Positions 53,924 to 57,507 of a stretch of 64,000 nucleotides of DNA are shown one piece after another; the stretch's first letter is position 1; each line of letters opens with the position of its first letter. Made by a program: the position numbers and the translations under genes. The notes under the pieces were generated by a model, which was given only the letters and a program-made list of their open reading frames with translations, ran no database searches and was not told the DNA's origin. Origin of the DNA: Antechinus flavipes (taxonomy: Eukaryota); contig NC_067400.1 of NCBI RefSeq assembly GCF_016432865.1, forward strand, positions 480,004,001 through 480,068,000, written 5' to 3'.

Positions 53924-54290
53924 CAGTTCCCAGCGGCTGTCCAGTAAGTACCAACCAGCCTTCTTGAACGAAGTCGCCGTTAGGGTGGAGCCAACCACCC
54001 CGGCGCAAGCGCACTTTTAGGCCACGCTCTCAATAGCCGTTAACCGTCCTACGGGGTTTAAACAGGATGTGGAACCCGCTCTAACTTCCTTCTAATTCTC
54101 CGCCCTTTTCCCAAAACCATTGGTTGTGTGTCTGAGTCATCTTCGAATCTCCTTCCTATTGGTTTATCTCCCCTCTACGCCCGCCCCAGAGCCCCGCTAG
54201 GATCCCTGGGAACGCCGTTTCTGGGGACACGTGATCTCTTGCCGCGCGGCCCTGGGACCGGCTGGTCGTCTTTCTAGTGAGTCTGGGAGA
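53924..54290. promoter_or_regulatory. HYLS1: CpG-island promoter; probable HYLS1 exon 1 (minus, ends 53924) and candidate plus-strand leader exon (about 54236-54276)
   Basis: CpG-rich; minus-strand donor CTG|GTGAGA at 53923; ATTGG (CCAAT) at 54119 and 54158; GC boxes near 54098 and 54180; TGAGTCA at 54133; CACGTG at 54228; plus-strand donor CTA|GTGAGT at 54277. The position matches the recalled human HYLS1 layout. Confidence 0.65.
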
Positions 54291-55019
54291 GGGTTCGTTG
54301 GAAATGGAAATGGGGGGCGTTGGGGTGCCGAGAAGCCCACCTAGATCGCAGATTCATGCCTCCCTCAGCCGCCAGGGATGGTTCTTCTTCACTCCTCAGG
54401 CAGGGTGGTGATCTAGGCCCAAACAGCCCTCGGCCCGGAGACGGGGACGGGGGTGGGATGGGGTGGGGTGAGGGGCATTGTGAGTAAATGGACGATAACC
54501 AGACCTCCTTTTTGTAGGTAAAGGGACTGAGACCCAGAGGAATAAAGTGACGTGGCCAAACACACACAGCTTTTGAGACGGAGTCTCTGATCCAATAGTC
54601 GAGTAAATTTCCCATTCTATCTCAAGTAAGTTCAAATATTTAAATAATTGAAGTCCTTCCCTTCTCCCATCCGATTTATAGTGTAGTGGTATTAACTCGT
54701 GAATTTATTTTCCCTCCCGAGTTTTAGCTTCCACAATCTTAAGCAACATATTAAGCACTCTATCTCAACTACTATTCTGGGTCATGGCCATACAGAAACA
54801 AAAAGCCGAAAGTACCTAATTCTAAAAAAAACTTTGTCAAATACTCAAAAAAAAGTTAAGCCAGTAGATCAGTCTTACACCCAGTCCCAGAATTTGTGTG
54901 GCATTTTAAAGCTTAGATATACGTAGAGTAAATAATTAAGTTTTAAGATAGTCGTTGGGAAAAGGCTTTTGTAAACGGTGGTAGTAGCCCAGAGTCCTGG
55001 AAGAAAGTGGGAATTCTGA

Positions 55020-56480
55020 AAAGGGAGAAGTGAGTACATGCCAGGAATATGGGAAAAGTGTGAAGGAGTGATGGGGGTATGAGAAATAGCTCTGTGCTAG
55101 CTCTTAAAAGGCTACTGGAGGAGAAAGGGGAATGAGTATAATGAGAAGGGGATAATAAAGCTCAAAGATTGTGAAGGATTTTAAATAAGGGAGTTTTTAT
55201 CAGAGCCACTGGAATATGGGTAGGGCAGTGAAATGATCAAAGGAGGAAAATCACTTTGGCAATTTTGTCAGTGAATGACCAAAGTGAAGAAGGTAGAATA
55301 AAGTTACCTAAAATAATGAGAATAAACCTTTATGTGGCATTTAAAGGGACAGATAGGTGATGTAATGGATGGATTACTGGGCCTGAAATTAGGAAGACTC
55401 CTCTTTATTAGTTCAAATCTGGTCTCAAACACTGTGACTGTGAGCAAGTCACTTAATACTGTTTGCCTCAGCATCTCATGTGCTAATGAGCTGGTGAAGG
55501 AAATGGCAAACCATTCCCCAAATGATGTCACAAAGAAGTGGACACAACAATAACAAAGCACTTTAGAATTTGTCTTTGTTTAGAGGTTATTACAATGATC
55601 CATGAAAGGTGATTAAGTCCTAAAGTAAGATGAAGCATTTATGAATAAAAAAAGGTGGCAACATGCCAGAGAAATTTGGGAGGTTGAAACAGGCTTTCTG
55701 TTTGATTGGACATAGATTTGGGAAAGTGAAACATTGAGACAATGTCAGATTTAGGGTCTTGGGAACCATGAAGTCTTGTGCTATTCACAGAAACGGAGGG
55801 ATGAGAACTTAAATTTATAGTTTGCTGGTTAAGTAGATCTGAATTAACTGCATAAAAGGTACTAATTAAACCTGACCCAGAGAGATGTGAAGAGAAGAAG
55901 CATACATACAGCATTGTCAAATGCAGCTAAAAGGTCAGGAAGGCTGAAAAGTGAGAAAACGCCATTAAATTTGGCAGCGAAGATATCACCGATATCTTTG
56001 GACAGAGTGCTTTCAGTTGAGTGAAGTTGGAAGCCATTGTGAGCTTTTTTCTGGAATGGGGATGGGAATGGGGAAGAAAAGGTGATAGTCTTTTTGGGGG
56101 GAAGGGGATAGAATCTAGTGAAACTTCATTTTGGTTGAGGAAGTTGATTTAAGTGATTTGCCCAGGGTCAAAAAGCTAGTAAGTGTCTGAGGCTGGATTT
56201 GCACTCAAATCCTTCTGATACCAGGACTATCTAGCTAAACTTTTATAAGAATGTAAAAACTTGAGTATATTTTGACAGCTTCATTGAAGGAATCAGCAGT
56301 TAGGGTTAAAAAGATTAGGAGATGATTAAAGTTAGTGATCTGAAAAAGGAAGTAAATCAGTCAAGGGCACACATAAAGGGATTAGCCTTAGCTAGAAGAC
56401 CTGTCTTTTCATTAAGGGGGAAAAAAGGGGTTTTGAGACAGAGAAAAGGGAAAAGAGAGAGCTCATATCCAGTGACCTCA
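55020..56480 (+). mobile_element. L2 relics with a MIR/MAR1-type SINE (about 55330-55560) between the HYLS1 promoter and RPS4
   Basis: ggagaggtcaggaag-type L2 motifs and gtcacttaa...gaaatggcaaaccattcc. Confidence 0.55.
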
Positions 56481-56715
56481 GTTTTCTAAGTAAGAGATCC
56501 ATTTTTCAGCTAAGAAGGTTAGAAATATGAGCAAGTTTAGAATGTCCTCTCTGGGGAGTAAAATAGTCATATAGAGAGGTACACGAAACTATTTAAAATG
56601 TGTAAGTTGCAAAGAGGAAATAAAAAGGAATTATTAGAATCTCCTGTACATTTTATGCATTTGCAAAACTGGGAATTTAAAGAAATTAATTCCTTTCTCC
56701 ACATATAGTATAACC

Positions 56716-57507
56716 ATGGCTCGTGGTCCCAAGAAGCATCTGAAGCGTGTAGCAGCTCCAAAGCACTGGATGCTGGATAAGTTAACAGGAGTTTTTGCTC
56801 CAAGACCATCCACAGGTCCCCACAAGCTGAGAGAGTGTCTCCCACTCATCATCTTCCTGAGGAACAGACTCAAGTATGCCCTGACTGGAGATGAAGTAAA
56901 GAAGATCTGCATGCAGCGTTTCATCAAGATTGATGGCAAGGTCCGCACTGATATTACATACCCTGCTGGCTTCATGGATGTCATTAGCATTGAGAAGACG
57001 GGTGAACATTTCCGTCTGGTTTATGATACAAAGGGACGCTTTGCTGTTCACCGTATCACTGCTGAGGAGGCTAAATATAAATTATGCAAAGTGAGAAAAA
57101 TCTTTGTGGGTACAAAAGGTATTCCTCATCTGGTAACCCATGATGCCCGTACTATCCGTTATCCAGATCCTCTCATTAAAGTGAATGATACAGTTCAGAT
57201 TGATTTAGAAGCAGGCAAGATCACTGATTTCATCAAGTTTGATACTGGTAACCTATGTATGGTGACCGGTGGGGCCAACTTGGGTCGAATTGGTGTGATC
57301 ACAAATAGGGAGAAGCATCCTGGCTCTTTTGATGTTGTCCATGTAAAAGATGCCAATGGCAATAGTTTTGCCACTAGGCTCTCAAACATTTTTGTTATTG
57401 GCAAAGGTAATAAGCCTTGGATCTCTCTTCCCCGAGGAAAGGGTATCCGCCTTACAATTGCTGAAGAGAGAGACAAGAGATTGGCAGCTAAGCAGAGCAG
57501 TGGCTAA
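56716..57507 (+). CDS. RPS4: 40S ribosomal protein S4 (eS4), intact intronless retrogene, 263 aa
   Basis: Full [12 protein letters not shown]...RLAAKQSSG* with no introns, stops or frameshifts. A TOP-like CCTTTCTCC sits at 56692 just upstream. A degenerate A-rich tail (about 57589-57606) and an imperfect direct repeat (aagaaattaat 56680 / aagaaataagt 57607) flank it. Confidence 0.96.

Follow-up and report, generated by a model that had tools for sequence, protein, structure and literature searches.

Second-generation processed pseudogenes point to a spliced, island-derived leader in a marsupial RPS4 retrogene

We asked how a promoterless retrocopy of a ribosomal protein gene came to be transcribed. 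The copy in question is an uninterrupted, intronless and intact RPS4 (eS4) open reading frame in a 64,000-nucleotide stretch of Antechinus flavipes DNA (NC_067400.1, positions 480,004,001 to 480,068,000; C3:480004001-480068000 in our contig numbering). This whole stretch is referred to as the window, and coordinates without a prefix are positions in it. The coding sequence (CDS) lies on the plus strand at 56716-57507, with its ATG at 56716, and comprises 792 nt or 263 amino acids; we call this retrogene R1. The genome measures 3.19 Gb and includes seven contigs of very large size. It contains one multi-exon RPS4 gene on an X-like contig (C7) and two intact intronless copies 80 Mb apart on C3, R1 and a second retrogene at C3:400.83 Mb. 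The X-linked gene, the parent with introns, matches the retrogene exon by exon. The two retrogenes share 99% of their residues and only 88% of their bases, with the CDS as the only alignable part, as purifying selection on the R1 protein would leave them; the X-linked gene is 83-84% identical to them in DNA and carries more amino acid changes. Over residues 24-263, R1 shares 99% identity with an avian eS4, and a protein search with the same residues returned no orthologue of R1, its sole marsupial match being a Trichosurus 'Y-like' protein (88%).

According to the passages and tables of Hughes et al. (2015, Genome Biol 16:104; PMC4446799) considered here, opossum has two RPS4 retrogenes that share an autosome and are syntenic in wallaby. 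The marsupial retrogenes are given there as older than 88 million years (My) and broadly expressed, the ratio of nonsynonymous to synonymous substitution rates between opossum and wallaby as 0.005-0.013, and the X copy as decaying in some marsupials. As in our genome, these are two intact intronless copies on a single autosome under very strong purifying selection, and R1 is evidently one of the two published old autosomal marsupial RPS4 retrogenes. The gene itself is thus not new, and the question is how it is transcribed.

The account that we favour, and hold with high confidence as a whole, is as follows. Transcription of R1 would start on the plus strand of a CpG island ∼2.4 kb upstream, which would be the promoter of the divergent gene HYLS1, and not at the retrogene's own retro-copied 5' end. 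The transcript would be spliced twice, from exon 1 (∼54201/54226 to 54276) to exon 2 (54518-54625) and on to an acceptor located a few nucleotides upstream of the ATG. The terminal oligopyrimidine (TOP) tract of the parental mRNA (56690-56700) would serve as the pyrimidine tract of this acceptor and be removed with the intron, and the acceptor would have moved by 6 nt after an AG at 56701-02 became AC. The resulting mRNA would have an ATG-free leader of ∼170-190 nt, the 792-nt CDS and a 3' untranslated region (UTR) of ∼370 nt ending past the AATAAA at 57861-66.

Processed pseudogenes of the spliced R1 mRNA

At least four dead processed pseudogenes in the genome are retrocopies of R1's own spliced mRNA, and each can be read as a fossil cDNA. 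They lie on three chromosomes: psL003 at C5:34.82 Mb, psL009 at C1:235.09 Mb, psL019 at C2:160.87 Mb and psL007 at C1:633.28 Mb. Their order is colinear with the window, that is, exon 1, exon 2, ∼12-13 nt before the ATG, CDS and 3'UTR, and both introns are missing. In psL003, window positions 54251-54278 and 54518-54624 stand back to back (locus positions 2278-2251 and 2252-2140; E 1.5e-14 for the second piece), and the same arrangement of exons 1 and 2 is found in psL009 and psL019, while psL007 retains an upstream portion of exon 1 together with the second half of exon 2. When exon 2 was compared to the pseudogene loci by blastn, the matches (E 2e-15 at L028, 4e-11 at L029 and 2e-6 at L019) were colinear with the CDS and 3'UTR. 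The exon-1 match directly adjoins the exon-2 homologue in all four fossils, and its scores of 13-18 compare with a mean of 7 (standard deviation ∼1.2) for shuffled sequences, none of 2000 shuffles reaching the observed score in any fossil. In piecewise blastn comparisons neither intron matched in place, and such intron matches as there were came from dispersed repeats elsewhere in the loci. Thus new 5' exons were joined to the CDS of a retrocopy, and a spliced R1 mRNA existed in the past.

The gaps in the window fit this reading, since GT stands at the start of each and AG, at present or formerly, at its end. Leader exon 1 (54201-54276, plus strand) has an exact 3' end, and its 5' end is approximate, taken from the ends of the fossils. 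It is followed by intron 1 (54277-54517), which begins with GTGAGT at 54277 and ends with AG at 54516-17. Exon 2 (54518-54625), of 108 nt, is bracketed by this AG and by a GTAAGT at 54626, where intron 2 starts; in the fossils intron 2 ended at 56702, and to the predicted present acceptor it would span 54626-56708. By eye, exon 2 is MIR-like and may be an exonised repeat. A reading made earlier from the sequence alone (the sequence-only reading) had named the donor 54276|54277, and this donor was indeed used: fossil exon-1 homology ends exactly at 54276, where the psL003 alignment stops. The same reading had treated the 108-nt exon as optional, and the four fossils, all of which contain it, give no sign of such optionality. 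Two ATGs lie at 54303-54312, just within intron 1, and donors further downstream at 54468 or 54480 would pull them into the leader; judging from the fossils it was the first donor (54277) that was used.

The parentage of the fossils is also clear from the rest of the copy. Their CDS is 81-86% identical to R1, 70-80% to the second retrogene and 71-74% to the X gene, and in a tree from which psL019 was left out (145 aligned bases) the other three cluster with R1 (support 0.93). The R1 3'UTR (57508-57878, with AATAAA at 57861-57866) was compared in psL003, psL009 and psL007, which share it to ∼57880, just past the AATAAA, and then continue into A-rich tails. A 3'UTR of the R1 type is carried by at least seven dispersed loci.

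These at least seven daughter pseudogenes (L028, L029, L030, L031, L032, L033 and L034; on C5, C1, C3 and C6) stand against a single daughter of the second retrogene (C2:15.47 Mb). They prove past germline expression of R1, and the difference in number suggests that this expression was much higher than that of the second retrogene. The fossil branches are 0.14-0.22 long, which on a rough calibration with the Sminthopsis and wombat alignments would date the fossils to several tens of My.

Leader start, acceptor and present-day form

We then considered where the fossil leaders begin. Their similarity to the window extends upstream to ∼54226 in psL019, ∼54221 in psL003, ∼54210 in psL009 and ∼54201 in psL007, the CACGTG box included. 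As similarity reaches 54201, transcripts began at or before that position. For these past transcripts the start sites therefore lie inside the CpG island, on the strand opposite to HYLS1. The sequence-only reading had placed the start at 54236, within TCTCTT (54235-54240), giving a 48-nt leader that begins with CTCTT and resembles a TOP leader. In all four fossils, homology continues upstream of this point, back to 54201-54226, which leaves the CTCTT leader without support. Whereas a TOP mRNA starts with C and then 4-15 pyrimidines, the fossil leaders start upstream of CTCTT in mixed sequence, so the proposal that the retrogene rebuilt a regulation of the ribosomal protein type finds no support in them either. 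Taken from 54200 to 56710, the leader measures 193 nt and is ATG-free, which supports a spliced leader, as does the 124-nt 5'UTR of one opossum RPS4 retrogene model in Table S1C of PMC4446799, among the parts of that source considered here. On this evidence a spliced, island-derived leader of R1 is highly probable.

The 3' end of the leader intron can be traced to the parental mRNA. The first exon of the X gene consists of a TOP tract and short leader, 25 nt in total, followed by ATG|GT. Counting gap-free backward from the ATG, R1 and the second retrogene match at 12 of 19 positions between -24 and -6, dropping to 3 of 19 just upstream; for R1 and the X gene the corresponding values are 11 of 19, with a 1-nt shift, and 2 of 19. 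Homology with both thus stops at the 5' edge of the tract, as expected for a full-length retrocopy of a TOP mRNA. The retro-copied tract, TTCCTTTCTCC, occupies 56690-56700 on the plus strand. It is absent from every fossil and was therefore intronic. The claim that the old 5'TOP had been turned into the pyrimidine tract of an acceptor is borne out by its position directly before the acceptor and by its absence from all fossil cDNAs. We had also considered the pyrimidine runs before the pseudogene ATGs as inherited TOP tracts and rejected this, as it is leader exon 2 that ends in these runs; on the same evidence we dropped the idea that the look of an acceptor is a property of all RPS4 copies.

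In the fossils, the stretch between exon 2 and the ATG amounts to 12-13 nt that align with 56703-56715, with differences that are mostly transitions, and in L029 the spacing of 81 nt is that expected for a start at 56703. A join at 56703 means that the acceptor AG was then at 56701-02. The window now has AC at these two positions (56701-56702), a single G-to-C change, and the second retrogene has a TAG at the same UTR position. An AG at 56707-08 is also present in three of the fossils, the stretch being deleted in psL003. Splicing has probably shifted by 6 nt, from 56701-02 to the AG at 56707-56708, which is the first AG past the tract and the best in the proximal 2 kb. We consider 56708|56709 the likelier present-day acceptor, with some reserve. 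The earlier claim of an acceptor immediately before the ATG thus stands insofar as a leader was spliced onto the retrogene in the fossils, and needs correction as to position, as the fossil acceptor was 6 nt upstream of the AG that had been named.

Direct reading of the window confirmed every motif that the sequence-only reading had listed. The donor reads CTA|GTGAGT, with GT at 54277-78; a branch-point-like TTAAT, recognised from its letters, lies at 56686-56690 (plus strand), 19 nt before the AG at 56707-08; and there is no AG between the tract and the TAG at 56706-08. With a crude position weight matrix built on approximate frequencies, the donor at 54277 ranked 8th of 163 GT dinucleotides and the acceptor at 56707 ranked 4th of 250 AG dinucleotides in 53900-56715, the latter being the top-scoring AG within the 2 kb adjoining the ATG. 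These splice motifs are good; taken alone they would be unconvincing and are no proof.

Next, we asked whether sequencing runs contain the island as RNA. The runs were searched by sampled words, which yields the share of words held by a run and neither the identity nor the strand of the words, and the run types are guesses ('RNA?'). With 53600-58000 as the query, 18 small 'RNA?' runs held 0.14-0.17 of the sampled words, about the size of the CDS, compared to 0.66-0.91 in large DNA runs. With 54180-54290 as the query (7 sampled words), 2-3 words were held by 15 small runs of 68-847 M letters, from two organisms and six studies, while DNA runs held all 7; ten of these 15 runs were also among those with a CDS-sized share of the larger query. 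Runs of 70-100 M letters are too small to contain a single-copy stretch of 111 nt as random DNA, so part of the island is probably present in abundant RNA. The HYLS1 transcript would presumably be too rare to assemble in such small runs, and an Rfam search of 52500-56710 gave no real family, so that none explains the island words. For a share of 2-3 words in 7, an exon 1 of 50-75 nt is a better fit than a 41-nt one.

Some of these points weigh against the account that we favour. The former acceptor has been destroyed in the window, so that splicing at 56708|56709 today is a prediction; the fossils are old and attest past germline transcripts, not present-day somatic ones; and the run data are unstranded and contain no junction, from runs whose types are guesses. 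For the present day, we infer the use of this acceptor and the inclusion of exon 2.

Could today's main form then be a shorter one, in which transcription starts at CTCTT (54236) and exon 1 is spliced directly to 56709, skipping the 108-nt exon and leaving the 48-nt TOP-like leader? All the motifs for it are present, this leader too is ATG-free, and the AG at 56707-08 is now the sole usable one; moreover, at least 2 of 7 words could come from a 41-nt exon (hypergeometric estimate ∼0.24). However, homology in all four fossils extends 10-35 nt upstream of 54236, through the CACGTG box, all four contain exon 2, and the 3 of 7 words found in one of the two organisms (B) fit a longer exon 1 better. 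We therefore regard this form as unlikely. Even less probable is an unspliced mRNA from a proximal promoter at or near the retro-copied TOP tract (∼56692), with the island transcripts being separate or bygone. The tract is intact, A/T-rich TATA-like sequence lies just upstream, and the loss of the former acceptor AG (AC at 56701-02) would be consistent with such a change, but the region has no CpG island and a G+C content of ∼35%, none of the fossils contains the tract or proximal upstream sequence, island words occur in abundant RNA-like data and a backup AG is available 6 nt downstream of the lost acceptor. Finally, that the pseudogene flanks resemble the island exons by chance, given the MIR-like look of exon 2 and the abundance of MIR-type repeats seen in the scattered intron-repeat matches, or that the loci are DNA-level duplicates of an uninterrupted ancestral locus, is scarcely credible in view of the order, orientation and ATG spacing common to all four loci across three chromosomes, the directly adjoining exon 1, a non-repeat sequence, in each, the GT/AG ends of the gaps in the window and a common R1 3'UTR that stops at one point past the AATAAA before the A-tails.

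The presumed HYLS1 island and the second retrogene

The spliced, island-derived leader raises the question of which gene this island belongs to. HYLS1 has its main coding exon on the minus strand at 36776-37693 (Pfam HYLS1_C, E 2.5e-40; 99% identity to Sminthopsis crassicaudata HYLS1). Only two CpG islands are found between 30 and 64 kb, at 31.2-31.8 kb and 53.7-54.5 kb. In the latter (53701-54500), ATTGG, the complement of a CCAAT box, occurs near 54120 and near 54160, and CACGTG is found at 54229-34. We infer that it is the HYLS1 promoter, as it is the sole island upstream of the HYLS1 CDS, lies at a distance of ∼16 kb from it and has a minus-strand donor, CTG|GTGAGA, at 53923. A putative non-coding HYLS1 first exon would occupy 53924-54150 on the minus strand, its 5' end being a guess. 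Hence, of the bidirectional HYLS1/RPS4 unit that had been proposed, the RPS4 side is supported, with plus-strand island transcripts spliced to RPS4 in four pseudogenes and island words in the RNA-like runs, and the ownership of the island by HYLS1 is deduced from its position and the donor.

We compared the HYLS1 loci of Sminthopsis, wombat, Gracilinanus and bilby, in alignments that cover the window up to 51.2 kb; the non-coding DNA of the window is 84-94% identical to that of Sminthopsis crassicaudata. HYLS1 as annotated in other marsupials has 318-325 amino acids (380 in Gracilinanus), at least 13 residues more than the ATG-started open reading frame in the window, and its CDS there spans ∼1.5-2.4 kb, which places the start codon in a small upstream exon; in the window this concerns the minus strand at 36776-39200.

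The second retrogene shows a similar arrangement. Here too a strong acceptor is present, with CCCTAG closing a run of pyrimidines 13 nt upstream of the ATG (L014:7600-7650), at the same UTR position as the former acceptor of R1. A CpG island lies ∼6 kb upstream (L014:1200-1900; C3:400828000-400837999), head to head with the retrogene, and has a good plus-strand donor at L014:1792. On its minus strand this island contains the initial coding exon of a CCCH zinc-finger gene, whose later exons gave matches to Pfam zf-CCCH and to yeast Tma46 (E 1.4e-22) and which, by its N-terminus, we take to be ZC3H15. A spliced leader, with a join from L014:1791|1792 or a nearby donor to L014:7634|7635, is predicted for the second retrogene as well. 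A search for a 5'-complete daughter pseudogene of this gene found none, the sole daughter (C2:15.47 Mb) being 5'-truncated.

Tentatively, a common rule may be suggested from the two loci, although we consider it doubtful. Both retrogenes would stand head to head with housekeeping CpG islands (HYLS1 and ZC3H15) and would have formed an acceptor AG at -15/-14 that immediately follows the TOP tract. The TOP tract would then be a ready-made pyrimidine tract that eases the plugging of such copies into foreign promoters, and the main eS4 mRNA would thus be TOP-less and escape co-regulation through mTOR/LARP1.

Relation to known retrogenes and minor observations

Retrocopies may use the bidirectional CpG promoter of a neighbour and gain 5' exons, for which Carelli et al. 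cite Fablet et al. (2009). This route is established, and cases have been counted (Carelli et al. 2016, PMC4772013). Like those cases, R1 lies head to head with a CpG island that presumably belongs to another gene and has new untranslated bridging exons, and the broad expression of those cases is also that published for the marsupial retrogenes. R1 differs from them in that the new acceptor takes its pyrimidine tract from the retro-copied TOP tract of a ribosomal protein mRNA, and in that processed pseudogenes of the second generation, not RNA data, document the structure. The passages and tables of PMC4446799 considered here do not describe promoters, leader exons, neighbours or the HYLS1 and ZC3H15 contexts of the marsupial retrogenes, and to these R1 adds a spliced leader; a full-text literature search for HYLS1 together with RPS4 gave nothing relevant. 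As far as that source is concerned, the rodent Rps4l and cattle RPS4 retrogenes are, like R1, autosomal RPS4 retrocopies kept by selection after the loss of RPS4Y, and are testis-biased, whereas the marsupial copies are broadly expressed. With respect to TOP mRNAs, the X gene, as parent, carries a TOP tract within its 25-nt leader, whereas the fossil leaders of R1 lack a pyrimidine start and the tract was spliced out.

What is particular here is that the TOP tract came to serve in splicing, that the second copy offers a parallel and that the proof comes from second-generation pseudogenes. R1 illustrates stepwise how a promoterless copy of a gene that is essential and highly expressed was turned into a functional one, by borrowing a presumably bidirectional promoter, adding two leader exons and putting the former cap-proximal TOP tract to use in splicing, and its daughter pseudogenes date this structure to tens of millions of years with neither reads nor a second species. 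As the retrogene and the general mechanism are already published, it is an instructive example and not a new principle. If the leader truly has no TOP start, it raises the question of how a non-TOP ribosomal protein mRNA keeps step with the others; and as the X copy is broken in some marsupials, R1 may be a main supplier of eS4.

The X-linked RPS4 of Antechinus flavipes (C7:82186000-82195999) has diverged beyond either retrogene, with 83% DNA identity and several changes at otherwise invariant residues, and may be under relaxed constraint, as published for wallaby. An inverted repeat of 80 nt (83% identity) flanks the second retrogene, with arms at C3:400835420-400835499 (minus strand) and 400836529-400836610 (plus strand), which lie ∼150-230 nt upstream of its ATG and ∼90-170 nt downstream of its stop codon, respectively; this may be a small repeat element. 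Within the 5' region of HYLS1, the window contains a PUS3 exon on the plus strand (40233-40805), and PUS3 is likewise antisense inside the HYLS1 5' region in the other marsupials examined.

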